Assembly (NCBI GenBank): GCA_004764695.1
Contig: SMSO01000034.1
Span: 1,984,001 to 2,048,000 of the forward strand
DNA: 64,000 nt
Source of the DNA: Schizochytrium sp. TIO01
Taxonomy: Eukaryota > Protista > Bigyra: Labyrinthulomycetes
Direction: 5' to 3'
Shown here: in pieces, positions 19,601 to 64,000 of the stretch
How the letters are laid out: every line of letters begins with the position of its first letter
Numbering within the stretch: position 1 is the first letter of the stretch
Notes under the pieces: generated by a model
Told to the model about the DNA's origin: nothing
The model's database searches: none
Seen by the model: the letters and a program-made list of their open reading frames with translations, nothing else
Made by a program: the position numbers and the translations under genes

Positions 19601-22600
19601 CTTGGTGTTTGTAGTACTGCTGGTACACTACCTAAGTAGTTTACGTAGTTGGGTACGCAAAGAAAGGCAAAGAAGTCTTTTCTTTTTTACAAAGAGAAGA
19701 AGGAAATCTATATAATTTGATAGGCCGCAGCAGCAGAAGAAGAAGAAGAGGTGATTGCTTTTTATTGTGAGGAAAAACAAAACAAAACAGGATCAACTGA
19801 CTGGACCTGTCTTTCCTGACAACGAATGAACAAAACAAACTTATTCATTTATACTCACAGTCTTCGTAGCAACAACATTGGCGATGAGGGCGCAAAGGCC
19901 GTCGCAAAGGCACTCGAGGGATGCAAGAACCTGACTCATCTGAAGTACGTTTGTGGAATCATCCACGAGGGAAAGCTATCGTAATAGTCAGGACCAAGCT
20001 TTTTCTTTCTTTCTTTTTAGTGCTTGGTGTTTGTAGTACTGCTGGTGTAGTTGGGTACGCAAAGAAAGGCAAAGAAGTCTTTTCTTTTTTACAAAGAGAA
20101 GAAGGAAATCTATAGAATTTGATAGGCAGCAGCAGCAGCAGAAGAAGAAGAAGAGCTGATTGCATATTATTGTGAGGAAAAAGAAAACAAAACAGGATCA
20201 ACTGACTGGACCTGTCTTTCCTGACAACGACTGAACAAAACAAACTTATTCATTTATACTCACAGTCTTTACAACAACAACATTGGCTCGGAGGGCGCAA
20301 AGGCCGTCGCAAAGGCACTCGAGGGATGCAAGAACCTTCAAACTTTGTCGTACGTTTGTGGAATCATCCACGAGGGAAAGCTATCGTAATAGTCAGGACC
20401 AAGCTTTTTCTTTCTTTCTTTTTAGTGCTTGGTGTTTGTAGTACTGCTGGTACACTACCTAAGTAGTTTACGTAGTTGGGTACGCAAAGAAAGGCAAAGA
20501 AGTCTTTTCTTTTTTACAAAGAGAAGAAGGAAATCTATAGAATTTGATAGGCAGCAGCAGCAGAAGAAGAAGAGCTGATTGCTTTTTATTGTGAGGAAAT
20601 ACAAAACAAAACAGGATCAACTGACTGGAGCTGTCTATCCTGACAACGAATGAACAAAACAAACTTATTCATTTTTACTCACAGTCTTGGTTGCAACAAC
20701 ATTGGCTCAGAGGGCGCAAAGGCCGTCGCAAAGGCACTCGAGGGATGCAAGAACCTTCAAGAATTGTAGTACGTTTGTGGAATCATCCACGAGGGAAAGC
20801 TATCGTAATAGTCAGGACCAAGCTTTTTCTTTCTTTCTTTTCAGTGCTTGGTGCTTGTAGTACTGCTGGTACACTACCTAAGTAGTTTACGTAGTTGGGT
20901 ACGCAAAGAAAGGCAAAGAAGTCTTTTCTTTTTTACAAAGAGAAGAAGGAAATCTATATAATTTGATAGGCAGTAGCAGCAGCAGAAGAAGAAGAGGTGA
21001 TTGCTTTTTATTGTGAGGAAAAACAAAACAAAACAGGATCAACTGACTGGACCTGTCTTTCCTGACAACGAATGAACAAAACAAACTTATTCATTTATGC
21101 TCACAGTCTTTACTGGAACAAGATTGGCGATGAGGGCGCAAAGGCCGTCGCAAAGTATCTGCACAAAGCATGTCCTTCTATTAGAATCTAGTAAGTTTCG
21201 TTTGTTCTGCTGCTGATTCCAGCTTGTGCAGAGCCTTGCCTTCGCTGGTTCTCTCCATGTCTCCATATGGACTTTCGAGGCCGTCTTTAGATGCGTTCAT
21301 CGTTTTTCTAACAATCCCTTTTCTTCTCCTTCTTTCGTTCGTTCGTTTACAAAACGCAGCTGTGACATTTTGTCTGGAACCCCTAAAGAATTGTTCGAAA
21401 GGGTGTGTTCTCCTGGAGAGGACATTGCAGATTTCTCGTCAGAGCTCGATTCCTATGCTTCCATAGAGACTGCAGAAAGCGAGCCTTCTGCAGAGCCCAA
21501 GAACGAGCAAGATGGCGATGAGAGCGCCGGGCTTGCTACTTTGGATGGATCTGGGTAAGTTCATGCGGTCAGTCTTTGTTTGGGATCGTGTAATTATTCA
21601 TTCCACGAATTGTGTTATTGAGATAGAGGGTATCCTAACTTTTGCTTTTGCCTTTATTACTGGTTCAACACCATTTTGCTCGTTTGCTTACGTCTTCTTG
21701 TTCGCCTCAGAGAACGGCCGGATGGAGCGAGCGTGAGTTTCGCTGATGTGGTGCAGCTTGCCAAGAAAGTCTCGGACTTGCGCGCGGACCGAGGTGGGGT
21801 CAGAGGAAACTCCCTGCAGACTGGGATTGCCCTGCTTGAGGAATTCGTTCGACCGGCGATCCAGGGCTACTTTGGCCAAGTGAAGTTGCGACAGGTTTTC
21901 GCTGACATCAAGAACTCCAAAGAGAGTCTTGACGTGCTACAAGGCCAGATTCGTGCAAGCTCTGCTGATGGCTTGGCCAGCCTCATCGAAAAGCGGAACA
22001 CCGAACGGAGGTACCTGTATTCACTTTTGCAGGTTGTGTACCCATGGGTTCGCGCCAACCTTTGTGAAAGTGATGAGAGTGCAGTGCGAAAATTCAAAGT
22101 GAAAATTGAAAGTTTGGTAAGCGATCTAAAGATCAACCTTGCTCCAGTCGATGAAGAGACCATCGCAGATGACTTCAAACACTGCCAAGAACTCGTTATT
22201 CAGGCTGTCCAATGCGTGGAAGGGTACAAGAGGAGTGGAGAAGGCCAACCCAACAAAATTGGTGAACGAAGCCAACAAGCTGTAAAGAGCGTCATCTCTC
22301 GATTGTCTGAGCTAGGACTTGGTGATGGATTATCGGTTGCCCTGAGGACACCTGAGCAGGCCATGGAGCTAGAACCCGAGTTGTCTGAACTTGAAAGTGC
22401 TCTCAAGGAAGAGATTGATGTTCTACAAGGTGATACTTTTAGTGTCCAATTGTCCGAAATTCTTTGCGCGATAAGCTCAACATTTGCTCGATTTGAAGGA
22501 TACTCTGAAAGTTCTGCGTTGACTGACGCGAGCAAATGCACACCAACAGAGCTCTCTGAGCTGTATGACTATGTAGCACTGGGTTTGAAAGAACCAAATA

Positions 22601-30266: not shown

Positions 30267-30384
30267 ACATTCGATCACACCACGCGGGTAACACCTCATC
30301 TCATTCGCACTGAGAAGTAAAGTCGCGTAGGGCCGGGTCAGTAGTATGATAGGGGACTGCATGCGAAGCCCTGGTGTTGAATGT
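30267..30384 (+). rRNA. 5S rRNA, second copy
   Basis: 118 nt, two substitutions relative to 15288-15405; followed by TCTTTTT. Confidence 0.9.
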
Positions 30385-32256
30385 TCTTTTTGCAATTTTT
30401 TCCCAAACCACTCATTTTTGGTACTTTGATATGAATCACTAATAATTGAGCAATGATATCAGTTCTCCACACAAAGCGGGGTTAATCTGTTCATTTTTGA
30501 CATACGTACTGGTGTCGTTGTCTTACTATCAACATTCCTGAATAATAAAATTGATAGGGCATCACAAAATTGATGTATCCTATTTTTTTTGCAATGCATT
30601 CTAAATTAGGCACAAAGAGAAAAATAAACAAAATCACTTTGCATTAATGGATGATCTACTAAGGAAAGACAGGGGCAGTTGCATTCTCTGTAAAGCACGT
30701 TTGCAGAAACAAATGAAACTTACGCACGAAAGTCTCAGTAAAGTGAATAGAAGATTCACAGAAAAAGGTCACACTTGCTTTTAAAAGGGGCCATGCTTAC
30801 CACGACTCTCAATCGCGAGATATATATTGTTCATTTCAAACGCCATTCGCCGGCCCGAGGATTAATTTTTCATCTTGTTCGTTTGCCCTGGTGGCGGACT
30901 CACAAGGTAACAACGCAGTAGTTGTAAGTTGAAGATGCCCATCAGCAAATTTAAGGAAATGACATGTTTAACAGCTTTCCTGAAGACAGCCATGTTATAA
31001 TTACTATATTTCGAAACAAAGGCAAGTACGAGGAACTTTGATTTAAATTCTCAAGCCACCTAAATTGATTTGGGATTCTAGAGGAACAAATTTGGCCATC
31101 AAGTGATTTACGAGATTTTGTTTTTAGTTTTTCCTAAACCAAGTTACTATTGGTACTTCAGTATAAACCTGCTAGGGTGGAACACATTCATTTACGAAAA
31201 ACCGAAGTCATAACTTAACAATATAACACAACGTTGTAATTGTCGCAACACTAATATGCCAAAATACACTAGATCTGATTGCTTTTCGTGCACAGTGCGA
31301 AAGATAATGATATTTCTTTACTCTATCACTTTATGAAGGAAGCACTAGTATCTGTATAGAGTCCGACAAAATGCACTACGAAATTCATGTCTGTTTTAGG
31401 CATTTGCAATGGTGGCTGCGGTGATTGCTTATTACACCATGAAGGACCCAGATCAGAAACCCTATTCAAAAAGGTTGTTATTGCTATTATCCTGGCTAAA
31501 ATGTGCATAGCATAAGAACAAAAACTTCATAACCCCCAGGTCTGAGACCACTCGATATGGTGATTATTTGATTTTCTTGCCACCCATGAAGTTGCTCGTG
31601 TTTGTGAAGAATTGTTCGTTACTTTAGTCAGCAGCAAATTTCAAAACCCATAACCAAGAGCAAAACAGTCACATACTGAGATTGACCAAGCTTGTGAATC
31701 AGCATCGATTACTTTCTCTAGAGAACATGCATTTGCCTTGATGTCAGACCGGAGGCCTTGCTTGTCGAAGGGCCAATGATAGCAGGAGCTCGAGCCTCGT
31801 CGAAGTCTCGCAGAGCCAAAGTTACTGCGATTTGATGTCACAACATCGTTCGTTTTGGCGGCCAAGCAGAGGAAACCGGAAGCTACGTAGCCTTCAAGCA
31901 CAGGTAGTCAACCCAGCATGTTTGCTAAGACCAAACGAACCACCCACTATGCCCCACCTGCGCACGGCCAGAGCGTCTGAAGCAGATCTCTATGATTTGA
32001 TTCAAGTTCTAATGCTTCTCCTTTTAATTATTCCCACACTTTGTTATAGAAATGAAAGACTAGAGTTCAATCTATCTAGAACAATAGTTAAAGAATTATC
32101 TAACTAGGATTTACATAACCTTAGCCTGCTTGCAATTCTACAGTTGAGAACTATGATTGCAAGCAACTACTTTACCTACACTAACGTCAAAGCCAGACAT
32201 TGTACGTTTTGATTGCGCAACACCTTCTTCTATTTTTCTCTAAGCTGGAGAAGGGG

Positions 32257-37438: not shown

Positions 37439-37511
37439 TGATCGAACCGAGAGTCGAACTCGGGACCAACAGCTTACTAAACTGTCACTCTACCAACTGA
37501 GCTATCCGAGC
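37439..37511 (-). tRNA. tRNA-Thr(AGT)
   Basis: GCTCGGATAGCTCAGTTGGTAGAGTGACAGTTT-AGT-AAGCTGTTGGTCCCGAGTTCGACTCTCGGTTCGATCA; cloverleaf with one acceptor-stem mismatch. Confidence 0.85.
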
Positions 37512-37681
37512 GCAAGTTCATGCCCTTGGCTTTAGTGCAGAATCAAGCTATCCTACAATTCAATCTCTATGCTTGCAAAAATGTTGCCTTAAGCATGTTC
37601 TTTCAATCAAGTCCTAAGGAGCATATGATACTCTGTCTGAATTTAAGAACTCTTCAAATGTGCAAAAAATCAAATTAGATT

Positions 37682-37753
37682 TACAGATGACGAGGATCGA
37701 ACTCGTGACCTTCCGCGTGTCAGGCGGACGCTCTACCACTGAGCTACACCTGC
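37682..37753 (-). tRNA. tRNA-Val(GAC)
   Basis: GCAGGTGTAGCTCAGTGGTAGAGCGTCCGCCT-GAC-ACGCGGAAGGTCACGAGTTCGATCCTCGTCATCTGTA; all stems pair. Confidence 0.9.
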
Positions 37754-38585
37754 GAGGTGAGGATCTGGCCCTCTACTGCTGGTTTCTTTCCATCATTCCT
37801 TTACGTATAATAAATGTCCAAACCAACTAGGGATTTATATTCGAAATTACCATTCTAGAACAGAACATTCTCTTTGCGTGGCGATCGCGGTTTTCAAAAG
37901 AAATTCTCCACCGAAATTCGCATACATTTGTCTCTTTTTTAAGTCAAAATATTCAGCAAACAGGCTATCAAAAGGTGTTTGTAAGTCTCTAAACTCTTGG
38001 ACGTGCCCATGACCACCACAAAAACAAAACAAAAGAAATACCAAAAATTCTAACAATATAGCAATAAAACAAGATCCCCAAAGTAAACGAAGAATGTCGG
38101 TTTAATGAACAGGAGAAACTGACTAAAGAGCAACCAATGGGTATGCTCACTGTCATTTCTATATCAATGATATAGAAAAGCACCACGAAAACGTTTTATG
38201 AATCTAGATATCCTTGTATCCCTAAGAAGATCCATCTAGATATTTCAAAAGCAAGACCATAATAAAAGCCTCGATGAACAATATTAAAAAAGTCATTGGT
38301 GTAGCTATGAACAAACAAATTCATCCGTCTGCATTATTTCTAAAAGTTTCAAATGCACCTATCAAACACTCGCTTTTAACCCTATCCCGAAACATAGTCA
38401 CTAAAACCAGATAAAATTACTGAATGCGCATTTGTGCTTAAACTGTGAGAAAATAACTGGATCAAAGGAGATCATCGGCACGAGCCTTTTGAAGGTCAAC
38501 ACATTTAAAGGAAACTTTCACTTTTCACAATGCCGGTTGCGTGTTTTATGCAAGTGAGGTTCTAGAAATGTGAGCAAAAGTGATT

Positions 38586-38968
38586 GCTGGAAGGTGATGC
38601 TGATTAGATTGAGGTTAGCTGTAAGGATGAACAGAAGAGGCTTGATGAAGGCTCAAGAAGGTTGATTTTAAGAGTTAACGCACAGCAAATCCCAGGACAG
38701 ATGGATTCATCTAGACATTTTTTTTAAAGTTGTTAGAGATACTCGATGGGGTTAGGTTAATCCAACTTCTCCAACCATCGATCTAAGATACACCATGCTT
38801 GGATGTAAGTAATGTGTATTCACACTTCTAGTTCTTGGCTCCGGCAATGACTGTCTATTCTTGATCTATTGTAAACCTTATGTCTAGTGGGGTTTCATAA
38901 AGGGAGGCCAAGAACTCTAGCAATGTCGTGTGCACTAGTTTCTTCGATTAGAGATCTCAGCAGTGATA
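38586..38968 (-). repeat. Dispersed repeat, copy 4 (inverted, more diverged)
   Basis: Same anchors; minus-strand frame reads ...LLRSLIEETSAHDIARVLGLPL*. Confidence 0.75.
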
Positions 38969-39738
38969 TATTACTCGTAGCTACTATACTGGAAACCTTC
39001 AAAGGGTTACAACTACCGACTGGTCTCTGATCTTCCTTACCATTCGAAAACTTAATTCCCAACCTACAAAACAATTTGATAGTGAGATAATTCAAGTTCT
39101 TTCAACAACTACAGCAGTTTTAGAATATAAGATAACAATTGTATGCTGCTGATAGAATTTAAACGACGAAGGGAAGCTACAGCATCTTGCTTGTTAGGAA
39201 GAATAACAATCAAAATATTACAATTTAATACCCATTCGTAGAAAACGTTATGTGGGATAATAGCGTGAACGGCTATTGCAAGGATACAACTCTGAAAAGA
39301 TAAACTTTTGCAAATAGAAAGGATCAAACTCTGGATCACTGCATGTGATTATATCTAATAGATCTTGAATAAATAGTATATACGTCCTGAGCCTTACCAC
39401 TTGGACATTGCTGCTCACAATCTAATTGCTTATGCACAATGCGTTTTTATGGATGGTCTCAGCTAAAGTCAAGAGCCTTGAAGGAGATTCCCTCGATTGC
39501 AAATCTTACATTTAGGTATAATTAACATACTCTCTCTCATATTTTTTAATTGTAGCTCAACAAGAAATTTGCAAAACCGGCAATAAGATACATCGCCTTA
39601 TCGCATCCAACGTGAACATATTTGAGACTAAAAGCAGCTTTCCAAAAGCCAACCATTTCAGTTTGTCTCAGCGTGCTAGAATGTTTTGATTGATACCTTA
39701 CTCAATCAGCGCTTAATCAATGAGTTTTAATATTTTAC

Positions 39739-39802
39739 TGCTGTTTTGTCCAAGTGCTGTTTTGTCCAAGTGCTGTTTTGTCCAAGTACAGTTTTGTCCA
39801 AG
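39739..39802. repeat. 16-bp minisatellite (TGCTGTTTTGTCCAAG) x4
   Basis: Read directly; fourth copy has two substitutions. Confidence 0.9.
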
Positions 39803-40055
39803 TGCAATAAAGAAGTATCATGAATTTTTCCGAGATCCTGTCTTCTCAATAGTGATCGTCATTCTCTAATTTCCTGTTCGTTTCAGTCTACTAAAACAAT
39901 CATTCTTTGTAGCTACTTAAATTCCTTGTTAATAAAGCTTCCAAGCTATACAAACCACAACAATCAAAATCAAAAAGAAGAACCTCTCTGGCATGGAGAC
40001 GCACTTACTCCTTCAGAGATAATATAGTAGCATCATAAAGAAATACAAAAATAAT

Positions 40056-52600: not shown

Positions 52601-54300
52601 CACTTAAACAGAAAGAGAAGGTTTTTCTTGATAAGCAACTCTCCGCTCTACTTATAAAGATAGACACAACGAGAGTAGGAAGTAAGACTCACAAAATCCC
52701 AGTCCCGAAAATGAAGACATGTCCCTACGACGACATAGAAGCACCGGCAACGTATAAGGCAATGAGACAACTACCAAGGGCTATACAATTATTATGGATT
52801 GAAGCAATGAATGGTGAATGTAGAAATCTTGCACGTGCCGGAGTGCTGGAACGCGTACATCTGGACACAGTACCAGAAGGACTATCTCCTATGGGAACAA
52901 GATGGGTATTTACAAAGAAGCCGTCACCATCGAACATATTAAAAGCTAGAGTTGTAGTTCAAGGCTATGACGAGAAAGTTGAAAATATATACGATATCTA
53001 CTCGCCAACTGTTAATGTAGTAAGCATTCGTGTAGCAACGATTATTGCACTTACAAAAGGATATGATGCAATCACAGTTGACGTAACAGCTGCGTTTCTG
53101 GAAGCACACATACCAGATGATGAATTTTTGTACATTCGTGGCATAGAAGGGGTCGAACTGAAAGAAGGCTATTGTTTCAGACTTCGCAAGAGTCTTTATG
53201 GTCTCAAAAGTGCACCTCGCCGATGGATGGATCATCTGACTGCGGTTCTAGAAAACTATGGACTGAAACGATCTATAACTGATGCATCACTCTTTATAGG
53301 TGAAGACTTACTCATGACTATTCATGTCGATGACATGCGAATCTTTGGAACACCCTCAGCAATTAATTCTATAGTTGAGGAACTACAGGCAAATGTAGGC
53401 ATTAAAGTGAACCGAGACCAGAAGTGTCATTATCTTAGTGATACACATGTATACATGAAATCACGAAAGACTTGTACTATCAGTCAAAGAGAGTACTGTA
53501 AAAAGGCTCTTAGACGCTGTAAGATGGATCAATGTAATCCAGTCAAAACTCCGTCCATTCTCAAAGAGTTGAGTGTACATACTGAAGATTCAGTGAATGA
53601 GAATTATCGTTCTCTGGTAGGAACACTTATGTACCTGCACAAAACTCGTCCTGATATGGCCTACACGCTGCACCAGCTAGCAAGTCATGGACAAAAGAAT
53701 GGTAAAGAGCACATGACTGCACTTAAACATGCATTCCGTTATGTACAATACACAAAGGCACTGCCACTTACCCTAAAAGGTGTTAAGTCGGTGAAAGATC
53801 TGGAACTTCAGGTATACACTGATGCATCATTCAACAAGAAGAATGACAAGCTACGCCGTAGTGTTTCAGGATACGTTATAATGTTAAATAACAGTGCTGT
53901 ACTATGGAAGACAGCTAAACAGGCTACAGTAGCAAAGAGTGCATATGAGGCTGAACTAATAGCAGCAGTTGCAGGAGTTCTTTATGGGGAATTCATTAGA
54001 CAATTGCTAGCTGATATGAGCATCCATATTGACGTAATACAGCTATTTGTTGACAATCAACCATTGGTCAAACGAGTTAAGAAAGAAGATGTCAATAGTG
54101 AGTCAGGATACCTGGCAGTACAACTTGCTGTACTAATTCACAGAAGACAAAATCAAACACTCAAAATTCATCATGTCAAAGGTACGGATAATATAGCTGA
54201 TCTATTAACCAAACCACTTGCACTCCAATCACATTGGAAACATGCGAGTCGTATTCTCAATGCAATAGGACCTGCCAAGCAGTTTGCGGGGGTGTATTGA
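49633..54300 (+). CDS. Copia polyprotein (partial Gag with two CCHC knuckles, protease, integrase, RT, RNase H), 1555 aa
   Basis: CFRCGLWNHSAENC, CSICNETGHKNTKC, IMDSGCNLH, LHLKLGH..CIDC, DVMGP..IRTDG..NPAEGINR, VDVTAAFL, KSLYGLKSAPRRW, IHVDDM, YTDASF..AELIA..VDNQ..NIADLLTK. Stop codon lies inside the 3' LTR. True start uncertain. Confidence 0.93.
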   Translation: MLLSLPLRKVNPKVETMLKQEGHLIEQQILQYAKQHNSTAASADYNGMDALQANVFRPRRFKQRLSQSNRSSQSHRLGGRRNPHTSKESCFRCGLWNHSAENCKYTTMKCSICNETGHKNTKCPQRNKSLHKESREHAKKRKRYQAKNHNKTLNVTLGHDSYDSDDESCISMNLAGALRVCRVNTDPTKPNQKSEGIIMDSGCNLHVTPHLELLKNYKTINTMSMKDAQGESVHIVGKGTLELQLRTDSNRIVPMEITAYHAPDLDHTLISTMRLTKCGYSVHHEQNHHYMKTPHGEIIILQKQSNLPMLIPVRALTATALAIRATKGLDKTNRDWLELHLKLGHASKQRMASSLGISASHINYRCIDCKIANFERLPVTKGPHKPYANAPRQAATADVMGPFNVPGLPQRFRYAITYRDLYSDFASVYYMRSTEEVVLTLDKFRKQWLKDTNNPHVTIRTDGATYFKGGSFASRIKDLKWTHQFSAPHSHATNPAEGINRVLMNGLRSHLKTASLGRKYWSFALSHTVHIRNRTASSRNVLSPYERHFGVAPDNSKFHIFGAPCVYKKFPVPPKLDDRGDIGYFLGYARNYTHGTYHVLTKKGKIIQSREVIVYDDAITENVRNRIETPDLDITTDEIQHWAYEDANKQIEGENFQVTPEATPKTRPLVDSQLQIVTPRPISTNSPQDSINKNNSPQGSRNKTNSPQDSINKNNSPQDSTNKNNSPQGSRNKTNSPQGSNGKDHSMADETPQDGARQASDKTSQDDVQTVTDKTSQDDAQHEPRIQISPRSLQQSIRTDPLAVGGTTREAKDAFGVESLAVGGTTREAKDAFGVEHFAVGGTTREVKDTFGVRTTREANDALGELTTREANDAFGDRRNNVSKDNTTDIRMEDHNDSHSEPESGEDHILDNHNDSQSDSDTAQDLANNSQHSRDDRRRSKRVRKQVVPLNVDYSAKGAASKHRYYAQSLKRSRMEGKNDNNLADSKSVTLKQKEKVFLDKQLSALLIKIDTTRVGSKTHKIPVPKMKTCPYDDIEAPATYKAMRQLPRAIQLLWIEAMNGECRNLARAGVLERVHLDTVPEGLSPMGTRWVFTKKPSPSNILKARVVVQGYDEKVENIYDIYSPTVNVVSIRVATIIALTKGYDAITVDVTAAFLEAHIPDDEFLYIRGIEGVELKEGYCFRLRKSLYGLKSAPRRWMDHLTAVLENYGLKRSITDASLFIGEDLLMTIHVDDMRIFGTPSAINSIVEELQANVGIKVNRDQKCHYLSDTHVYMKSRKTCTISQREYCKKALRRCKMDQCNPVKTPSILKELSVHTEDSVNENYRSLVGTLMYLHKTRPDMAYTLHQLASHGQKNGKEHMTALKHAFRYVQYTKALPLTLKGVKSVKDLELQVYTDASFNKKNDKLRRSVSGYVIMLNNSAVLWKTAKQATVAKSAYEAELIAAVAGVLYGEFIRQLLADMSIHIDVIQLFVDNQPLVKRVKKEDVNSESGYLAVQLAVLIHRRQNQTLKIHHVKGTDNIADLLTKPLALQSHWKHASRILNAIGPAKQFAGVY
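51682..52262 (+). repeat. In-frame minisatellites in the IN-RT linker: 30-bp unit x~6 (NSPQDSINKN) and 48-bp unit x~3 plus partial copies (AVGGTTREAKDAFGVE)
   Basis: Visible in both DNA and translation. Confidence 0.85.
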
Positions 54301-54489
54301 AGTATAACAGCTAGGTGTGTACTCTGGTGTGTATGGGAACACCAAGTAGGATGTACATAAGCCAAAACCCTAAACCTAAGACAATGAAGACCTTGTCAGC
54401 AGTTCCTGAATGTTAATGCTAACTATTCTTTTCCTTCATCTCTCTACCTACGCTATCTCTTGGTGATCGCCTCACGCTAACTTGCAATA
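54295..54489 (+). repeat. 3' LTR
   Basis: Identical to the 5' LTR; followed by TSD CTTTC. Confidence 0.95.
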
Positions 54490-56028
54490 CTTTCATATTG
54501 AATGTGCATAACTCAAAACAATTACTTTCGTCGTTAACTTGTGAAGCAGACTAGTATGTGGAGTCGTCCAAGCAATGGAGGTCGTGAAAGGAAAAGAAGA
54601 AGGAAGGCAAGGCATTCACGGTAAGGCTCTGCTCTCCCGGACAATTTATACGACGGGCGTCCACCTCATGAAGAGTGCCCACACTACTGGGCGTCAGATG
54701 CCCGGTGGATTGAATGCCGTACGCAGCTCTTACATCTTTATCCCTTGATATAGGGCGATAGAAGCTGCGCTAAAAAAGAGATTGCTTATTGAGTTTATCG
54801 AAAAAGTAATCAGAGTAGACCAGAAATGAGGCGTTAAAGTGCAGCAAACTTTGCTAGGGATATTCCCATGATACTTTTGACTGCTCGAGCTTTTGAGTCA
54901 TTACACGCTTCTTCTTCTTCTAGCTACTTTCTTATTTGAACACAGTCTATATCAGGTTACTTTACCAGAATACAGAATCTCAGATTCGCTAAATATAGCT
55001 ATTGCATATTAGCTTCTGCAATGGACCGCACAGAGGTAGTCTGACAAGAGCACGAGCTTTAGTAAGGTGGTCAGTGAGACCTGATGAAGAGAGTGAAAGG
55101 GAAAGAATATTATTGAGTTTATTGAGCTTGTAGACACAGACAAGCTCAATACATAGATTTCGCGTCAAAGGGCTCAGTTAGTTTAGATTCGGGTAATACA
55201 CCTGGATAGATATGGCTTTGGTAATAAATGAGGCCTGAAACAGCATTCTGTTTTGAACGCACAACAACGCACAACAACGCCATCCTTGTTGGAGAATGGC
55301 CCCATACTCTCGTCGTCAATTACTTTGCAACAGGTTATTAGTTATTAAATCACATGTGTCATTAAATATTTTGTCTGGCAGCTATAGAAAAGCAGAAAAC
55401 AATGGTCAAGCTTCCCCATAGACGTTGTTGCAAAAGCTGTTTCATTTTCATAATTTATCGAGCCTTCTCAAACTTGTAGAGGTCGACCTGAGTAAACTAT
55501 GAACTTAAAGAAGCTGAAACTTGAGTCATCCGAATATGACAACCGACATTTTCGGATGGGGATCTGAGGAACTTGAAAACGGATTCCAAACTCACATTCC
55601 AAACTCCAAAATACGTATAAAGAATTATGCACTTATAAGGCATTATTTAACGTAAGGGTGGATTTATTTTATCCATGCAATGAACCCTCAAGCACTTTAT
55701 TCTAAATGCAACCTACTACGGAGTTTTGAGCAATACGGCAACTTTTCACTTCACATCTTGAAAATCACTGATTGCCACATGCACGTTCACTAGTCGTGTC
55801 TTGTGCTCTAACCTCTTTCAAAATATTGTCTCTGACTCTTACGGCGTTTAATTTATTCGCTTCGTAAATTGTCAATATCAGTATTCAATCAAAATGTTTC
55901 CATCACCTACACGCTCTATATTATGATAATTAATATTTTCTAGCACATTCATAATCCTATGAATCTATAAAATAGTAATATTCTTCACATAGTTAAATAT
56001 ACAGCAACAAGGTTTAATAAAGAATAAA

Positions 56029-59000
56029 CTATTTAGAACTATTTTTATTCAAAATATAAGGGCCTAGACATCCCAATGCTCCACGAAAGGCAACGTTTGC
56101 AGCTTCCAGCAAATCAAGCTCTACTTTCTGCGCAACAAGATAGTCCTCTTTCGGACTCAGCTCACCAAAGCTGTTAGCAGGCCAAGCTTGTGTAAGAAGA
56201 CTACGCTTCACTGAAAACGGCAGACTAAATACATTGTTTATAACATGTATACAACGAAGCTCACGAGATATCTGTTCAAGCATTTTCCTTCTTGCCTTTG
56301 CAGAACAAATTTGCTTATTCAATTCGAGCTCCTTGTACATTTCATCCGTCAACCCATCGGACATTCTAAGGATCAGTAAAAACCAAATGACATCAACTCC
56401 GTTCGTCAGTTAACAATTTCACGTCATCAAAAGGCACCCACAGTATTGCCAGTACAGTTTCATTTATTCTCTGATATTATCATGTTCTTTGTTACATCCA
56501 CAATCAACCCAACAAACAATGCCGCAACAAACTTGCAATGACGCGAAGAAAAACATAGGCAAAACAACACCGATCCACCCACCAAACAACAAACCAAGCA
56601 TCATGTACAAACAAGTCCACCAGCTGCGGTGTTGCGTAGACAACTTACTTGAGTGATGTCAGCGACCGGTTCTCTTTCAGCGACGCAGCCACTGCCTTGG
56701 CGCCCTCTGAGCCGATATCGTTGCCAGCAAGACTGTCGATTTGATTGAATGATGGCAAGCAATACATTACATTGCAATGCATTACATTGGATACATGCAT
56801 GGACGTGAGTGATCTTTGGTTGGCTTTCAGCATTTATCTTTGTTGTGTTGTCATTTTGCTCTTTGTTCGATGGATGTATACTCACTCAAACAGACAACTC
56901 ATCCATCCATCAAACAAACAAGCGATTGCATAAACTTGCAAAACAACACCGACCCACCCACCAAACAACAAACCAAGCATCATCTACAACCAAGTCCACG
57001 AGCTGCGGTGTTGCGTAGACAACTTACTTAAGTGATGTCAGAGACAGGTTCTCTTTCAGCGCCGCAGCCACTGCCTTGGCGCCCTCTGAGCCGATCTGGT
57101 TGCGTTCAAGACTGTCGATTTGATTGAATGATGGCAAGCAATACATTACACATTAAATATTACAATAGATGCACGCATGCATGCATGGACGTGAGTGATC
57201 TAGGTTGGCTTTCAACATTTATCTTTGTTGTGTTGTCATTTTGCTCTTTGTTCGATGGATGTATACTCACTCAAACAGACAACCCATCCATCCATCAAAC
57301 AAACAAGCGATTGCATAAACTTGCAAAACAACACCGACCCACCCACCAAACAACAAACCAAGCATCATGTACAAACAAGTCCACGAGCTGCGGTGTTGAG
57401 TAGACAACTTACGTTAGTGATGTCAGCGACCGGTTCTCTTTCAGCGCCGCAGCCACGGCCTTGGCGCCCTCGTCGCCGATTTCGTTGCCTTCAAGACTGT
57501 CGATTTGATTGAATGAAGGCAAGCAATACATTACACGTTACATATTACAATAGATGCACGCATCCATGCATGGACGTGAGTGATCTAGGTTGGCTTGCAG
57601 CATTTATCTTTGTTGTGTTGTCATTTTGCTCTTTGTTCGATGGATGTATACTCACTCAAACAGACAACTCATCCATCCATCACACAAACCAGCCATTGCA
57701 TAAACGTGCAAAACAACACCGACCCACCCACCAAACAACAAACCAAGCATCATGTACAAACAAAAAGTCCACGAGCTGCGGTGTTCCGTACACAACTTAC
57801 CGAAGTGATATCAGAGACCGGTTCTCTTTCAGCGCCGCAGCCACTGCCTTGGCGCCCCCTGAGCCGATTTCGTTGCGTTCAAGACTGTCGATTTGATTGA
57901 ATGATGGCAAGCAATACATTACACGTTACATATTACAATAAATGCACGCATGTATGCATGGACGTGAGTGATCTAGGTTGGCTTTTAGGATTTCCTCTTT
58001 GTTGTGTTGTCATTTTGCTCTTTGTTCGATGGATGTATACTCACTCAAACAGACAACTCATCCATCCATCAAACAAACAAACAAACAAACAAACAAACAA
58101 ACAAACAAACAAACAAACAAACAAACAAACAAACAAACAAACAAACAAACAAACAAACAAACAAACAAACAAACAAACAAACAAACAAACAAACAAACAA
58201 ACAAACAAACAAACAAACAAACAAACAAACAAACAAACAAACAAACAAACAAGCGATTGCATAAACTTGCAAAACAACACCGACCCACCCACCAAACGAC
58301 AAACCAAGCATCATGTACAAACAAGTCCATGAGCTGCGGTGTTGCGTAGACAACTTACTCAAGTGATATCAGCGACCGGTTTTCTTTCAGCGCCGCAGCC
58401 ACTGCCTTGGCGCCCCCTGAGCCGATTTCGTTGCGTTCAAGACTGTCGATTTGATTGAATGATGGCAAGCAATACATTACACGTTACATATTACAATAAA
58501 TGCACGCATGTATGCATGGACGTGAGTGATCTAGGTTGGCTTTTAGGATTTCCTCTTTGTTGTGTTGTCATTTTGCTCTTTGTTCGATGGATGTATACTC
58601 ACCCAAACAGACAACCCATCCATCCATCAAACAAACAAGCGATTGCATAAACTTGCAAAACAACACCGACCCACCCACCAAACAACAAACCAACCATCAT
58701 GTAAAAACAAGTCCAAGAGCTGCGGTGTTGCGTAGACAACTTACGATAGTGATGTCAGCGACCGGTTCTCTTTCAGCGCCGCAGCCACTGCCTTGGCGCC
58801 CTCGTCGCCGATATCGTTGCCCCAAAGACTGTCGATTTGATTGAATGATGGCAAGCAATACATTACACGTTACATATTACAATAGATGGATGCATGCATG
58901 CATGCATGGACGTGAGTGATCTAGGTTGGTTTTCAGGATTTATCTTTGTTGTGTTGTCATTTTGCTCTTTGTTCGATGGATGTATACTCACTCAAACAGA

Positions 59001-62000
59001 CAACTCATCCATCCATCAAACAAACAAGCCATTGCATAAACTTGTAAAACAACACCGACCCACCCACCAAACAACAAACCAACCATCATGTACAAACAAG
59101 TCCACGAGCTGCGGTAATGCTAAGACAACTTACTCAAGTGATGTCAGCGACCGATTCTCTTTCAGCGCCGCACCCACTGCCTTGGCGCCCTCTGAGCCGA
59201 TGCTGTTGCTTTGAAGACTGTTGATTTGATTGAATGATGGCAAGCAATAATTTACATTGCATGAGATGCACGCATGCATGCATGGACGTGAGTAATCTAG
59301 GTTGGCTTTCAGGATTTCATCTTTGCTGTATTGTCATTTTGCTCTTTGTTCGATGGATGTATACTCACTCAAACAGACAACTCATCCATCCATCAAACAA
59401 ACAAGCCATTGCATAAACTTGCAAAACAACACCGACCCACCCACCAAACAACAAACCAACCATCATGTACAAACAAGTCCAAGAGCTGCGGTGTTGCGTA
59501 GACAACTTACGATAGTGATGTCAGCGACCGGTTCTCTTTCAGCGCCACAGCCACTGCCTTGGCACCCTCTGGGCCGATATAGTTCCATTGAAGACTGTCG
59601 ATTTGATTGAATGATGGCAAGCAATACATTACACATTACATATTACAATAGATGGATGCATGCATGCATGCATGGACGTGAGTGATCTAGGTTGGTTTTC
59701 AGGATTTATCTTTGTTGTGTTGTCATTTTGCTCTTTGTTCGATGGATGTATACTCACTCAAACAGACAACCCATCCATCCATCAAACAAACAAGCGATTG
59801 CATAAACTTGCAAAACAACACCGACCCACCCACCAAACAACAAATCAAGCAACATGTACAAACAAGTCCATGAGCTGCGGTGTTTCGTAGAAAACTTACA
59901 ATAGTGATGTCAGCGACCGGTTCTCTTTCAGCGCCGCACCCACTGCCTTGGCGCCCTCTGAGCCGATCTGGTTGCGTTCAAGACTGTCGATTTGATTGAA
60001 TGATGGCAAGCAATACATTACACGTTACATATTACAATAAGTGCACGCATGCATGCATGGACGTGAGTGATCTAGGTTGACTTTCAGCATTTATCTTTGC
60101 TGTGTTGTCATTTTGCTCTTTGTTCGATGGATGTATACTCACTCAAACAGACAACTCATCCATCCATCAAACAAACAAGAGATTGCATAAACTTGCAAAA
60201 CAACACCGACCCACCCACCAAACAACAAATCAAGCAACATGTACAAACAAGTCCATGAGCTGCGGTGTTTCGTAGAAAACTTACAATAGTGATGTCAGCG
60301 ACCGGTTCTCTTTCAGCGCCGCACCCACTGCCTTGGCGCCCTCGTCGCCGATATTGTTCTCCCGAAGACTGTCGATTTGAGTGAATGATGGCAAGCAATA
60401 CAATACACGTTACATATTACAATAGATGCACGCATGCATGCATGGACGTGAGTGATCTAGGTTGGCTATCAGCATTTATCTTTGTTGTGTTGTCATTTTG
60501 CTCTTTGTTCGATGGAGGTACACTCACTCAAACAGACACCTCATCTATCCATCAACAAACAAGACATTGCATAAACTTGCAAAACAACACCGACCCACCC
60601 ACCAAACAACAAACCAACCATCATGTACAAACAAGTCAACGAGCTGCCGTGTTGCGTAGACAACTTACTTGAGTGATGTCAGCGACCGATTCTCTTTCAG
60701 CGCCGCAGCCACTGCCTTCGCGCCCTCTGAGCCGATATCATTCTCTGAAAGACTGTCGATTTGATTGAATGATGGCAAGCAATACATTACACGTTACATA
60801 TTACAATAGATGCACGCATGCATGCATGGACGTGAGTGATCTAGATTGGCTTCCAGGATTTATCTTTGTTGTGTTGTCATTTTGCTCTTTGTTCGATGGA
60901 GGTACACTCACTCAAACAGACACCTCATCTATCCATCAACAAACAAGACATTGCATAAACTTGCAAAACAACACCGACCCACCCACCAAACAACAAACCA
61001 ACCATCATGTACAAACAAGTCAACGAACTGCCGTGTTGCGTAGACAACTTACTTGAGTGATGTCAGCGACCGGTTCTCTTTCAGCGCCGCAGCCACTGCC
61101 TTCGCGCCCTCTGAGCCGATATCATTCTCTGAAAGACTGTCGATTTGATTGAATGATGGCAAGCAATACATTACACGTTACATATTACAATAGATGCACG
61201 CATGCATGCATGGACGTGAGTGATCTAGATTGGCTTCCAGGATTTATCTTTGTTGTGTTGTCATTTTGCTCTTTGTTCGATGGATGTGTACTCACTCAAA
61301 CAGACAACTTATCCATCTATCCATCGAACAACCAACCAAACGAACAAACAAACAAGCGATTGCATAAACTTGCAAAACAACACCGACCCACCCACCAAAC
61401 AACAAACCAAGCATCATCTACAACCAAGTCCACGAGCTGCGGTGTTGCGTAGACAACTTACTCAAGTGATATCAGCGACCGGTTCTCTTTCAGCGCCGCA
61501 GCCACTGCCTTGGCGCCCTCTGAGCCGATGCAGGTGTTTCTAAGACTGTCGATTTGATTGAATGATGGCAAGCAATACATTACACGTTACATATTACAAT
61601 AGATGCACGCATGCATGCATGGACGTGAGTGATCTAGGTTGGCTTTCAGCATTTATCTTTGTTGTGTTGTCATTTTGCTCTTTGTCCGATGGATGTATAC
61701 TAACTCAAACAGACAACTCATCCATCCATCCATCCATCCATCCATCAAACAAACAAACATGCGATTGCATAAACTTGCAAAACAACACCGACCCACCCAC
61801 CAAACAACAAACCAAGCATCATGTACAAACAAGTCCACGAGCTGCGGTGTTGCGTAGATAACTTACTCAAGTGATGTCAGCGACCGGTTCTCTTTCAGCG
61901 CCGCAGCCACTGCCTTGGCGCCCTCGTCGCCGATGTAGGTGTTTCTAAGACTGTCGATTTGATTGAATGATGGCAAGCAATACATTACACGTTACATATT

Positions 62001-63929
62001 ACAATAGATGCACGCACGCATACATGGACGTGAGTGATCTAGGTTGGCTTTCAGCATTTATCTTTGTTGTGTTGTCATTTTGCTCTTTGTCCGATGGATA
62101 TATACTCACTCAAACAAACAACTCATCCATCCATCAAACAAACAAGCGATTGCATAAACTTGCTTGCCAAAACAATCCCGACCCACCCACCAAACAACAA
62201 ACCAAGCATCATGTATAAACAAGTCCACGAGCTGCGCTGTTGCGTAGACAACTTACGATAGTGATGTCAGCGACCGGTTCTCTTTCAGCGCCGCAGCCAC
62301 TGCCTTGGCGCCCTCATCGCCGATATCGTTGCCTCCAAGACTGTCGATTTGATTGAATGATGGCAAGCAATACATTACACGTTATATATTACAATATAAG
62401 CACGCATGCACGCATGGACGTGAGTGATCTAGGTTGGCTTTCAGGATTTATCTTTGTTGTGTTGTCATTTTGCTCTTTGTTCGATGGTTGTATACTCACT
62501 CAAACAGACAACCCATCCATCCATGAAACAAACAAGAGATTGCATAAACTTGCAAAACAACACCGACCCACCCACCAAACAACAAACCAACCATCATCTA
62601 CAAACAAGGCCACGAGCTGCGGTGTTGCGTAGACAACTTACTTGAGTGATGTCAGCGACCGGTTCTCTTTCAGCGCCGCAACCACTGCCTTGGCGCCCTC
62701 TGAGCCGATATCGTTGACCGAAAGACTGTCGATTTGATTGAATGATGGCAAGCGATACATTACACGTTACATATTACAATAGATGAACGCATGCATGCAT
62801 GGACGTGAGTGATCTAGGTTGGCTTTCAGGATTTCATCTTTATTGTGTTGTCATTTAGCTGTATGTTCGATGGATGTATACTCACTCAAACAGACAACTT
62901 ATCCATCCATCCATCCATCCATCCATCCATCCATCCATCCATCCATCCATCAAACAAACAAAGAAGCAATTGCATAAACTTGCAAAACAACACCGACCCA
63001 CCCACCAAACAACAAACCAACCATCATCTACAAACAAGGCCACGAGCTGTGGTGTTGCGTAGACAACTAACTTACTCAAGTGATGTCAGCGACCGGTTCT
63101 CTTTCAGCGCCGCAGCCACTGCCTTGGAGCCCTCGTCGCCGATATAGTTGCCTTCAAGACTGTCGATTTGATTGAATGATGGCGAGCAATACATTACACG
63201 TTACATATTACAATAGATGCACGCATGCATGCATGGACGTGAGTGATCTAGGTTGGCTTGCAGCATTTATCTTTGTTGTGTTGTCATTTTGCTCTTTGTT
63301 CGATGGATATATATTCACTCAAACAGACAACCCATCCATCCATCAAACAAACAAGCGATTGCATAAACTTGCAAAACAATACCGACCCACCCACCAAACA
63401 ACAAACCAAGCATCATGTATAAACAAGTCCATGAGCTGCGGTGTTGCGTAGACAACTTACGATAGTGATGTTAGCGACCGGTTCTCTTTCAGCGCCGCAG
63501 CCACTGCCTTGGCGCCCTCTGAGCCGATTTTGTTCCACGAAAGACTGTCGATTTGATTGAATGATGACGAGCAATATATTACACGTTACATATTACAATA
63601 GATGCACGCATGCATGCATGGACGTGAGTGATCTAGGTTGGCTTTCAGCATTTATCTTTGTTGTGTTGTCATTTTGCTCTTTGTTCGATGGATGTATACT
63701 CACTCAAACAGACAACCCATCCATCCATCAAACAAACAAGCGATTGCATAAACTTGCAAAACAACACCGACCCACCCACCAAACAACAAACCAAGCATCA
63801 TGTACAAATAAGTCCACGAGCTGCGGTGTTGCGTAGACAACTTACTCAAGTGATGTCAGCGACCGGTTCTCTTTCAGCGCCGCAGCCACTGCCTTGGCGC
63901 CCTCTGAGCCGATCTGGTTGCGTTCAAGA
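56029..63929 (-). CDS. LRR gene C (5'-partial): at least 19 one-repeat LRR exons plus terminal RELRCIH domain exon
   Basis: 84-nt exons at 63846-63929, 63461-63544, 63076-63159, 62642-62725, 62257-62340, 61867-61950, 61462-61545, 61053-61136, 60669-60752, 60285-60368, 59900-59983, 59511-59594, 59134-59217, 58745-58828, 58359-58442, 57801-57884, 57413-57496, 57028-57111, 56649-56732. Each reads GACAG|T-LxxNxIG(S/D)[21 protein letters not shown]|GTAAGT with no stops. Terminal exon 56365-56029 follows TACTGATCCTTAG in matching phase 2. Confidence 0.9.
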
Positions 63930-64000
63930 CTGTCGATTTGATTGAATGATGGCAAGCAATACATTACACGTTACATATTACAATAGATGCATGCATGCAT
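56560..64000 (-). repeat. Tandem exon-intron array, ~385 bp unit, at least 19 copies, running off the window
   Basis: Near-identical ~300-nt introns whose lengths vary mainly through (CCAT)n and (CAAA)n tracts. Confidence 0.95.
58070..58252. repeat. (CAAA)n microsatellite expansion (~45 units) inside one array intron
   Basis: Other units carry only 2-4 CAAA copies at the same site. Confidence 0.92.

Follow-up and report, generated by a model that had tools for sequence, protein, structure and literature searches.

Long repeated elements near chromosome ends have been described in Aurantiochytrium limacinum MYA-1381 under the name LORE-TEARS (Collier et al., bioRxiv 10.1101/2023.06.15.545109; later Curr Biol 2023). 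They were presented as long repeated spacers without database similarity, for which a structural or regulatory role was suggested, and a text search of the preprint and its supplements found neither "LRR" nor "leucine". Group 0 of these elements has a median unit of 385 bp, 1.8-20.6 units and approximately 94 elements per genome. Genes in which LRRs and exons correspond are known from several other eukaryotes. In Ectocarpus, the LRR-ROCO genes carry one LRR per fixed-length exon, undergo exon shuffling and have been proposed as candidate immune receptors, with positively selected sites on the concave face (Zambounis et al. 2012, PMC3341825; Teng et al. 2024, PMC11378527). The LRR genes of Tetrahymena comprise tens of thousands of 90-bp exons and are associated with a LINE-like element (Xiong et al. 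2019, PMC6564038). In vertebrates, the LRR domains of NLR proteins and ribonuclease inhibitor show a strict correspondence of exon and repeat, which permits in-frame exon skipping (Hoss et al. 2019, PMC6642158).

Here, we present a computational analysis of a 64,000-nucleotide window of the Schizochytrium sp. TIO01 genome, in which a 385-bp array on the minus strand is an intact, intron-rich protein-coding gene rather than a satellite. It resembles LORE-TEARS group 0 in its unit of 385 bp, its 20 units and its location, with 18S on one side and the nearest 5S gene on the other, and the approximately 94 elements per genome compare with about 100 C-terminal exons here. In both organisms, the telomeres are of the TTAGG type and rDNA transcription runs towards the chromosome end, and LORE-TEARS group 5 (median 430 bp; flanked by two 5S genes) corresponds to a further array of the window, array 1. 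The likeness is one of unit size, copy number and position; in contrast to the published non-coding spacers, the arrays described here are exon-intron arrays of intact genes.

With the LRR-ROCO genes of Ectocarpus, likewise a stramenopile, the gene shares one LRR per exon, frame-compatible exons and a repeat number that varies among paralogues. The Ectocarpus exons, however, measure 72 nt, encode plant-type LRRs of 24 residues and are fused to a ROC-COR GTPase, whereas 84-nt exons, RNI-type LRRs of 28 residues and only a helical tail are found here, together with introns conserved like the exons and a location within the rDNA block at chromosome ends. Tetrahymena offers single-length tandem exons, phase-2 introns, clonal amplification of whole exon-intron units and an exon number that varies in close paralogues, and its youngest LRR genes are mostly subtelomeric; the accessible parts of the article report neither an rDNA link nor sharply bounded hypervariable codons (PMC6564038). 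As in vertebrate NLRs, the repeats belong to the RNI-like class of 28-29 residues and the fold matches NLRP1, NOD2 and NLRP3, but the units are far more uniform, the family lies in rDNA blocks and a NACHT domain is missing, for which there is no room because the 5S gene is only 458 bp upstream of exon 1. From Paoletti, Saupe and co-workers, fungal NLRs with highly internally conserved WD40, ANK or TPR repeats are said to act in non-self recognition; these repeats are reportedly near-identical in DNA save for a few codons of the interaction surface and are shuffled by recombination. They differ from the present case in repeat type and in lying within one exon, accompanied by an NTPase and an effector domain.

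Structure of the gene and its family

Tandem Repeats Finder reported a 385-bp period over 56559-58080 and 58242-64000, the array being split in two by a (CAAA)45.8 run. On the minus strand, splice-aware scanning detected exactly 19 LRR exons in the window, each 84 nt long, flanked by AG/GT and in one stop-free frame (Table 1). These are the same exons as in an initial annotation made from the sequence alone, and the variable peptide starts listed there, from LERNQ to LAGND, agree item by item. The annotation had counted "at least 19" repeats and proposed to search past position 64000 for the first exon. This search located one further LRR exon as well as a 65-nt first exon with an ATG, and the next 20 kb held no additional LRR exon of the 385-bp array type, which sets the number at exactly 20. 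The complete gene (locus L006) has 22 exons, namely the 65-nt first exon, the 20 LRR exons (19 in the window) and a terminal exon of 112 codons. Joined in silico, they form a CDS of 2082 nt (693 codons plus stop) that is open from ATG to TAG with no internal stop.

All 21 introns show GT/AG borders and are in phase 2 by the usual definition, because the upstream exon gives two bases of the split codon and the downstream exon the third, which is always T. The introns measure 283 to 474 nt, the LRR exons uniformly 84 nt, and by sequence inspection read-through into an intron closes the frame a few codons past each LRR exon. As each LRR is one 84-nt exon between phase-2 introns, the frame survives the gain, loss or exchange of any number of units. 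Apart from 15 hypervariable nucleotides, the exon-plus-intron units of the array are about 95% alike. The product is a 693-residue cytosolic LRR-only protein composed of a 21-residue N-terminal cap, twenty 28-residue RNI-type LRRs and a 111-residue lineage-specific helical tail.

Table 1. Positions of features in and next to the window
Feature	Position	Strand	Remark
Array 1	16889-21190	+	further 84-nt LRR exon array in window
18S rRNA gene	45159..46945	-	part of rDNA operon 41424-46945; downstream of LRR gene, same orientation
Conserved 3' flank and spacer, probably with 3' UTR	54490..56028	-	83-95% identity to paralogous loci
Terminal exon	56029..56365	-	base 1 completes split codon, then 111-residue C-terminal domain and TAG; frame continuous with LRR exon 20
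Last intron	56366..56648	-	283 nt, phase 2, GT..AG; 280-297 nt in paralogues
385-bp exon-plus-intron array	56649..64000	-	LRR exons 2-20 of 20 and introns
LRR exon 20 (LAGND...)	56649..56732	-	splice-aware scan
LRR exon 19 (LERNQ...)	57028..57111	-	splice-aware scan
LRR exon 18 (LEGNE...)	57413..57496	-	splice-aware scan
LRR exon 17 (LERNE...)	57801..57884	-	splice-aware scan
(CAAA)n microsatellite expansion	58070..58252	.	in intron after LRR exon 16; 474 nt versus modal 301 nt
LRR exon 16 (LERNE...)	58359..58442	-	splice-aware scan
LRR exon 15 (LWGND...)	58745..58828	-	splice-aware scan
LRR exon 14 (LQSNS...)	59134..59217	-	splice-aware scan
LRR exon 13 (LQWNY...)	59511..59594	-	splice-aware scan
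LRR exon 12 (LERNQ...)	59900..59983	-	splice-aware scan
LRR exon 11 (LRENN...)	60285..60368	-	splice-aware scan
LRR exon 10 (LSEND...)	60669..60752	-	splice-aware scan
LRR exon 9 (LSEND...)	61053..61136	-	splice-aware scan
LRR exon 8 (LRNTC...)	61462..61545	-	splice-aware scan
LRR exon 7 (LRNTY...)	61867..61950	-	splice-aware scan
LRR exon 6 (LGGND...)	62257..62340	-	splice-aware scan
LRR exon 5 (LSVND...)	62642..62725	-	splice-aware scan
LRR exon 4 (LEGNY...)	63076..63159	-	splice-aware scan
LRR exon 3 (LSWNK...)	63461..63544	-	splice-aware scan
LRR exon 2 (LERNQ...)	63846..63929	-	splice-aware scan
LRR exon 1	64314-64231	-	outside window, locus L006
Exon 1 (65 nt)	64927-64863	-	outside window, locus L006
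Divergent 5S gene	65385-65503		outside window, locus L006

The C-terminal domain has 101 matches in the genome, which represent about 100 genes. It was called uncharacterised at first, and no Pfam family was found for it; this wording has to be amended, as the domain is a lineage-restricted helical module of these roughly 100 genes, with three helices in the AlphaFold2 model (3-47, 50-59 and 71-109; pLDDT 73). In place of this module, sibling arrays in the same genome have kinase-RING or ROC-COR-TIR effectors spliced to them. The number of LRR exons per array varies from 4 to 20, and the complete model of a 65-nt exon 1, n LRR exons and the terminal exon is present in 17 of 20 paralogous loci. 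Most copies are located near TTAGG telomeres, between 18S and a divergent 5S gene; in 17 of 21 loci, the 5S gene is found 300-500 bp upstream of exon 1, and 18S is downstream.

Array 1 agrees with the 385-bp array in exon length, phase and variable positions (its exons are 84 nt long and start with TCTT), and blastn gave no significant match between the two introns. From these features, the initial annotation had deduced that one architecture was amplified twice from different founders. Unrelated introns and a common exon architecture are in line with independent founders, but "twice" is too few: the genome-wide exon count, proposed there as a check, gave at least 1012 matches to the exon pattern, compared with none in the reversed control; the periods of these arrays are about 385, 420-430 and 475-480 bp.

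Coding constraint, hypervariable codons and transcripts

Throughout the family, indels are kept to the introns, as had been proposed as a sign of selection on the coding unit. In 21 loci, 267 of 271 exons are exactly 84 nt long, AG/GT-flanked and stop-free, whereas, of 223 introns, 56% have a length other than the modal 301 nt. In the saturated codons of the family exons, 0 stops were seen versus approximately 72 expected from column frequencies (P ~1e-37, or ~1e-20 leaving out the dimorphic codon 9).

The hypervariable 15 nt are codons 3, 4, 6 and 9 and the split junction codon. Among the units of the array, nucleotide diversity amounts to 0.53 at these sites, compared with 0.057 in the introns and 0.050 in the remaining exon sites, which bears out the restriction of hypervariability to a few codons. 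The same pattern extends across 267 family exons, with an entropy of 3.0-3.7 bits at positions 3, 4 and 6 and less than 1 bit elsewhere, and 174 distinct hypervariable haplotypes occur among 242 exons. Even where two units diverge by less than 1% in 219 nt of flank plus framework, 41% of their hypervariable nucleotides differ. The recent duplicates L017 and L018, with an intron divergence of 0.36%, differ in the hypervariable codons by whole-triplet swaps only (TGA to ATC and TCA to GAC, both common alleles). Judged from such comparisons, much of the visible diversification looks less like new point mutation than like short conversion events that reshuffle existing triplets.

The pN/pS of the framework is only 0.76, so that homogenisation accounts for more of its conservation than any purifying selection that could be demonstrated. 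Within the hypervariable codons, pS (0.54) is close to pN (0.60), and classical dN/dS inside these codons is not in itself evidence of positive selection. Instead, the argument from diversity relies on three points: a tenfold higher diversity than at intron and framework sites, the lack of stops, and the composition of the five variable positions, whose residues are polar, charged or aromatic.

Single LRR exons match Pfam LRR_6 with E values of 3e-4 to 4e-3, and the relative P0011 reaches 81.8 bits. In the AlphaFold2 model of P0011 (pTM 0.70), which indicates the fold class in this relative, S27, L28, the junction residue, L2 and x3 form the strand, x4 and x6 the loop, and x9 the helix start. 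By this model, the variable codons would map to the LRR beta-strand, to the loop behind it and to the residue that opens the next helix, and the variable residues are the predicted binding face. The top Foldseek matches of the model were the LRR domains of tropomodulin, NLRP1, NOD2 and NLRP3.

Transcripts with the predicted splice junctions exist in related sequences from MMETSP. The C-terminal domain is carried by P0001, P0012 and P0013, while in P0007, from a paralogue, a last LRR exon is spliced to the terminal exon across the predicted junction, and P0002 joins six consecutive exons of one LRR each from a gene about 90% like gene A of the window. None of them exceeds 90% identity with any copy in the TIO01 genome, and they represent either another strain or species or chimeric assemblies. 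For the 385-bp subfamily, the support for expression and LRR-to-LRR splicing comes only from relatives and from one junction.

Possible origin and function of the gene family

Taken as a whole, we regard it as likely that the intact gene belongs to a concerted family which is shaped by conversion and diversifying selection and constitutes an intracellular recognition repertoire. The family, mostly placed in the 18S - gene - 5S block at chromosome ends, would evolve in concert: unequal crossing-over would alter the repeat number, and gene conversion would hold framework codons and introns about 95% identical across units and loci. The five hypervariable positions would be kept maximally diverse, with short conversion tracts moving pre-existing variable triplets among near-identical units and diversifying selection keeping repeats and paralogues distinct, so that a germ-line repertoire of binding surfaces could result. 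We infer that the LRR proteins may bind variable intracellular ligands, e.g. viral or other non-self proteins, and the helical tail might have a role in assembly or signalling. The approximately 100 genes are, accordingly worded, a candidate recognition (immune-like) repertoire.

RNI-like LRR proteins have non-immune roles as well. Expressed LRR proteins with a function outside defence, such as allorecognition or mating-type discrimination, cytoskeletal or flagellar scaffolding, or regulation linked to the rRNA genes, would agree with the tight, conserved linkage of the family to 5S and 18S genes and with the 20-LRR gene product, in which no NTPase, TIR, death-fold or other signalling domain was found; the leading fold matches of P0011 also include tropomodulin/leiomodin and axonemal LRR proteins. 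We consider such a function unlikely, since about 100 copies, saturated variation of the binding face and a variable repeat number are atypical of housekeeping scaffolds. Allorecognition fits the pattern equally well with defence, and the two cannot be separated here.

The variable codons of real genes could also be diversified by a targeted or somatic mechanism, e.g. local hypermutation, programmed cassette exchange or combinatorial skipping of the symmetric phase-2 exons, in place of germ-line conversion and selection. The variable patches are contiguous DNA triplets, as diverse at synonymous as at non-synonymous sites and uncoupled from flanks identical over more than 200 nt, and every exon is splice-compatible with every other. 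However, recent duplicates differ by swaps of common existing triplets, as conversion predicts, and the synonymous third-base diversity at Leu28 consists of two old haplogroups and CpG transitions (CGA, TGA, CAA), not of random mutation. Position 6 holds A at its second base and position 4 a purine, which allows only hydrophilic or aromatic residues and points to selection on the protein. As the germ-line genes are, in addition, complete here, unlike lamprey VLR genes, diversification of this kind seems quite improbable.

That the 385-bp units are non-coding subtelomeric spacers serving chromosome-end or rDNA maintenance, with LRR frames as relics or chance products, is hardly credible: the same repeat type was published as long repeats without database similarity in A. 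limacinum, and the introns are conserved as much as the exon framework, so homogenisation works on DNA and not on protein, but nearly all exons hold length, splice sites and frame while introns freely gain and lose bases, the near-saturated codons are free of stops, start exon, terminal exon and stop codon are kept in 17 of 20 loci, relatives have transcripts with the predicted junctions, and a DNA-level role alone cannot explain exon integrity, absence of stops and transcripts. In Schizochytrium sp. TIO01, the arrays that correspond in unit size and position to the published non-coding spacers are coding gene arrays.

The 20-LRR copy is located 2.0 Mb into a 4.85-Mb contig, and a retrotransposon lies about 1.5 kb downstream of its stop codon, so that this copy might be silenced. 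It differs from the LORE-TEARS in being internal to its contig and not terminal, and the TIO01 contigs are larger than the published chromosomes.

Structure and splicing of the leucine-rich repeat gene

The minus-strand array which begins at 56029 shows a period of 385 bp from 56559 to the end of the window (Tandem Repeats Finder), with a (CAAA)46 run as its sole break. On the minus strand, every unit contains an 84-nt segment between AG and GT which is open in one frame. The 19 exon peptides listed in the initial annotation agree item by item with the exons found here. Its count of at least 19 exons holds for the window, and extension into the next 20 kb (locus L006) adds one more leucine-rich repeat (LRR) exon, resulting in a total of 20, as well as exon 1, which is separated from the first LRR exon by a 548-nt intron containing an (AAGC)73 run. 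Joined to the terminal exon, these exons form a frame of 2082 nt with a single stop, located at its end. All 21 introns are phase 2 introns, the codon being split after its second base. The following exon contributes the third base, which is invariably T in the LRR exons. Reading through an intron leads to a closed frame within a few codons, and the protein therefore needs splicing. All 20 repeats comprise 28 residues and the RNI-type pattern fits across the exon junction (L25-T-S-L28-j-L2-x-x-N5..., in which j denotes the split junction codon). Neither a signal peptide-like N-terminus nor an enzymatic or NTPase domain was found in the protein. Perfect tetranucleotide runs, (AAGC)73, (CAAA)46, (ATCC)13, and (CATC)7, are found in several introns of the array, always at the same point, so that this intron has a microsatellite-prone site.

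Evidence for splicing comes from transcripts of relatives. A comparison of a profile of the 111-residue C-terminal domain (tail) with 1.84 billion representative proteins retrieved no more than three true clusters, whose origin is MMETSP transcriptomes or JGI; the remaining three matches are coiled-coil or low-complexity noise. After a start in retained intron sequence, transcript P0007 continues with a last LRR exon spliced to the terminal exon. The codon at this junction, GA+A, is as predicted for certain paralogues, for example L015 or L019. In P0002, six consecutive exons with one LRR each are joined. This transcript derives from a gene about 90% like gene A, a second LRR gene of the window, and is collinear with six of its exons (12616 down to 11060) at 82-94% identity. 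The best identity of any copy in this genome to P0007 is at most 90%, and therefore the transcripts are either those of a relative or chimeric assemblies. At the level of the lineage rather than of this copy, they demonstrate splicing and expression of the architecture.

Features of the window and of the adjoining 20 kb (L006); positions above 64000 lie past the window
Feature	Position	Strand	Remarks
rDNA operon 18S-5.8S-28S	3940-9456	-	complete; Rfam
Gene A, second LRR gene	11060-12616	-	same helical tail, 35% identity; tail match at 11060-11377
5S genes	15288-15406 and 30267-30385	+	Rfam
rDNA operon 18S-5.8S-28S	41424-46945	-	complete; Rfam
18S gene downstream of the LRR gene	45159-46945	-	
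5.3-kb insertion	49166-54489		relative to four paralogous spacers; ORF 49633-54300, +
Terminal exon	56365-56029	-	in the joined frame
Additional (20th) LRR exon	64314-64231	-	past the window
Exon 1	64927-64863	-	65 nt; ATG start; last two bases of the exon directly followed by GTAAGT; past the window
5S gene, identical	65385-65503 (L006:1385-1503)	opposite to LRR gene	458 bp upstream of exon 1
Tetranucleotide runs	L006:559-850; 58070-58252; 62901-62951; 61719-61746		introns of the array

Constraint on the exons and predicted fold

Nucleotide diversity among the units of this gene is 0.057 in the introns and 0.050 at 69 framework bases of the exon, and reaches 0.53 at the remaining 15 bases, tenfold above the introns. 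These 15 bases are made up of codons 3, 4, 6, and 9, of the third position of Leu28, and of the two bases with which the exon ends inside the split codon. In order to extend the comparison, 20 paralogous loci were taken and their units located with a profile built from this array. According to the initial annotation, the reading of the exons as coding would fail if those of other copies carried stops or frameshifts at the rate seen in introns. In fact, 267 of 271 family exons are exactly 84 nt long, flanked by AG and GT, and stop-free, whereas 56% of 223 introns deviate from the modal length of 301 nt. The four exceptional exons carry insertions of 1-2 nt and belong to L022 (on the 18.5-kb contig G000:C29) and L027 (at the end of G000:C24); they may be assembly errors or true pseudogenes.

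In 242 non-redundant exons, no stop was observed in the four variable codons, compared to about 72 expected from per-column base frequencies. The variable positions are mostly occupied by S, G, Y, R, N, D, E, Q, K, and W. At position 6 the second base is conserved as A, and at position 4 a purine is conserved, which excludes aliphatic residues. Stop-free variable codons, preserved exon length, and this residue composition are properties of a translated sequence.

Single exons matched the second half of the Pfam model LRR_6 (PF13516) at positions 10-24, with E-values of 3e-4 to 4e-3 and 17.5-20.9 bits. Since a single exon covers no more than a portion of one model copy, these scores do not reach the cut-off for whole proteins (23.4); the relative protein P0011 reached 81.8 bits. 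The LRR pattern tested was the RNI-like one of 28-29 residues, LxxLxLxxNxIGxxGaxxLaxaLxxNxx. The AlphaFold2 model of P0011 (pLDDT 78, pTM 0.70) consists of five LRRs and the tail, and its alternating 5-residue strands and 13-residue helices give this relative the predicted form of an alpha/beta solenoid, in which the concave face is lined by a parallel beta-sheet. Foldseek matched it to the LRR domains of tropomodulin, NLRP1, NOD2, and NLRP3 with E-values down to 2e-9. In the model, the strand is formed by S27-L28-j-L2-x3, the variable residues x4 and x6 lie in the following loop, and x9 is the first helix residue. The variable residues of this predicted structure thus map to the strand and the loop that follows it. 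Since j and x3 alternate with core leucines, the geometry of LRR solenoids should orient them towards the concave surface.

For the tail, three helices are predicted, of which the first and the last are long and the middle one is short. The tail belongs to no Pfam family, has no fold match in the PDB (best Foldseek E-value 6.8), and found no usable match in a protein atlas. Prediction of a tail homodimer gave a score of 0.00, the fold of the partner being uncertain.

A gene family in the rDNA spacers

The terminal exon and its flank are present in at least 43 genomic copies at 82-95% DNA identity, and a six-frame search with the 111-residue tail yielded 101 matches ranging from 97% down to about 35% identity. 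Divergent subfamilies show 35-63% identity in the tail. Among these, gene A of the window was examined; its 84-nt LRR exons are divergent and non-homogenised. The genome-wide count of exon starts, which had been proposed in the initial annotation as a way to number the loci, returned 1012 matches to a 35-place pattern and none for the reversed control. These matches form arrays with spacings of about 385, 420-430, and 475-480 bp. The LRR exons of 17 of the 20 paralogous loci are preceded, at a distance of 140-750 nt, by a conserved first exon of 65 nt (MSD..P..ALE.LQNGAT.L) and followed, after 280-297 nt, by a terminal exon that is likewise conserved. These 17 complete paralogues contain between 4 and 20 LRR exons, and therefore repeat number varies among intact genes.

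With the 18S gene downstream and a 5S gene upstream, the gene occupies the 18S-5S spacer. In 17 of 21 loci (L006 and 16 others), exon 1 is preceded at 300-500 bp by a divergent, 100% identical 5S gene. A short, conserved promoter region therefore serves, in divergent directions, a Pol III gene and a gene that is presumably transcribed by Pol II. In other copies, about 3.8 kb separate the stop codon from the 18S gene; here this stretch is enlarged by the 5.3-kb insertion. The ORF of the insertion encodes a copia-like Gag-Pol protein of 1555 residues with CCHC knuckle, integrase, and reverse transcriptase motifs, and the tandem repeats at 51684-52262 fall inside it.

Contig ends of this assembly carry (TTAGG)n, and many family members are located 5-110 kb from contig ends or on short contigs. 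The two rDNA operons and two 5S genes of the window sit 2.0 Mb into a 4.85-Mb contig with telomeres at both ends. The block known from chromosome ends is here present in an internal copy, which may be the trace of a chromosome fusion or else an assembly join. Between the two rDNA blocks, four tRNA genes are clustered on the minus strand (37439-40632), and tRNA genes also occur upstream of the 5S gene in L008, L017, and L025. Beyond the 5S gene of L006 there are long intron-free ORFs for an MscS-like channel protein (3552-6284, plus strand; borderline match to Pfam MS_channel_2nd) and for a PI3/PI4-kinase-like protein (6953-8569, minus strand).

A comparable arrangement has been described for Aurantiochytrium limacinum, whose telomere-to-telomere genome has TTAGG telomeres and subtelomeric rDNA transcribed towards the telomere (bioRxiv 10.1101/2023.06.15.545109). 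Its LORE-TEARS repeats include group 0, comprising 94 elements of 1.8-20.6 units with a median unit of 385 bp between 5S and 18S, and group 5, with a median unit of 430 bp between two 5S genes (Table S5 of the same preprint). The array described here (385 bp x 20, between 18S and 5S) fits the definition of group 0 exactly, as does the other LRR exon array of the window (430 bp x 10, between the 5S genes at 15288 and 30267) that of group 5. From unit size, copy number, and position, we infer that both arrays are LORE-TEARS elements. The words "LRR" and "leucine" are absent from the preprint and its supplements (bioRxiv 10.1101/2023.06.15.545109), and the term "LORE-TEARS" was found in no other paper of the literature searched. 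A repeat class published as enigmatic non-coding spacers of chromosome ends in a model thraustochytrid would accordingly encode a large intact family of LRR proteins with a variable surface. The reading of the unusual chromosome ends of that genome would change as well, each rDNA unit having its own variable gene.

Origin of the diversity and possible role

The framework of the exons shows a pS of 0.061, equal to the intron diversity, and a pN of 0.047; the uniformity of the units is therefore mainly due to concerted evolution. Where two units differ by less than 1% over 219 bases of flank and framework, 41% of their variable bases are nevertheless different, and thus the variable triplets are uncoupled from their surroundings. 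The most recent duplicates compared, L017 and L018 (0.36% intron divergence), have only two differences at variable sites, both of them exchanges of whole triplets between common alleles (TGA -> ATC, TCA -> GAC), together with three framework changes clustered within 7 nt. This pattern is the signature of short conversion tracts with ends that are invisible in identical flanks. The pair L025 and L026, aligned one repeat out of register, was left out of the comparison. In the mechanism we propose, conversion and unequal exchange among at least 1000 units would homogenise everything, and selection would discard products with look-alike repeats or stops while keeping old and new variants at the five positions.

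A locally raised mutation rate may likewise be a source of the diversity. The synonymous third base of Leu28 seemed to argue for such local hypermutation, but its diversity resolves into CpG transitions (CGA, TGA, CAA) and a second old haplogroup (CTA-T..). A shuffled module of "half exon + intron + half exon" was rejected: units that carry an identical variable haplotype also agree in the junction triplet within the exon in 51% of cases and in the one beyond the upstream intron in 34%, against a background of 18%, and therefore linkage simply follows distance.

The size of the family (about 100 members), the saturation of its binding face, and its variation in length are features of recognition families, and we therefore favour intracellular ligand recognition as its role, the helical tail perhaps serving as an assembly or signalling module. 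Allorecognition or another role may apply instead. A far bolder reading takes the approximately 100 rDNA-embedded LRR genes as a clonally variable recognition system, an antibody-like repertoire of a single-celled protist, directed for example against persistent mirusviruses. Subtelomeric, nucleolus-associated chromatin would restrict expression to one or few genes at once, as for var or VSG, phase-2 exons compatible in any combination would permit exon skipping, and the binding surfaces would be renewed as conversion continues among no fewer than 1000 near-identical units. Taken jointly, we regard these propositions as quite improbable. The organism is a persistent mirusvirus host, culturable, and genetically tractable, and therefore the hypothesis of a recognition repertoire in a protist is directly testable. 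The gene family also offers an unusually clean study case, with introns and framework homogenised to about 95% and five codons saturated.

Comparison with known systems separates the gene from several of them. NLR proteins are defined by a central STAND NTPase (NACHT/NB-ARC); here, only the 65-nt first exon lies upstream of the LRR exons, followed by the 5S gene, and no long ORF was found between the two. In lamprey VLR, an incomplete germ-line gene is completed by copying flanking LRR cassettes, whereas the gene described here already runs from ATG to stop in the germ line, its introns being of the ordinary GT/AG kind. The ROCO subfamily of Ectocarpus possesses a ROC-COR GTPase effector, which is absent here, the sole non-LRR part being the 111-residue tail without Pfam match. 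The gene shares features with the exon arrays of Ectocarpus ROCO genes and the 90-bp type of Tetrahymena, and after brown algae and ciliates this would be the third independent protist lineage with receptor-like diversity from arrays of one repeat per exon. The class is characterised by one repeat per exon with constant length and symmetric phase (84 nt and 21 phase-2 introns in the present gene), a repeat number that varies among close paralogues (4-20 in this family), and excess variation at exposed concave residues; the tenfold excess observed here maps to the strand and the loop after it in the model of the relative.
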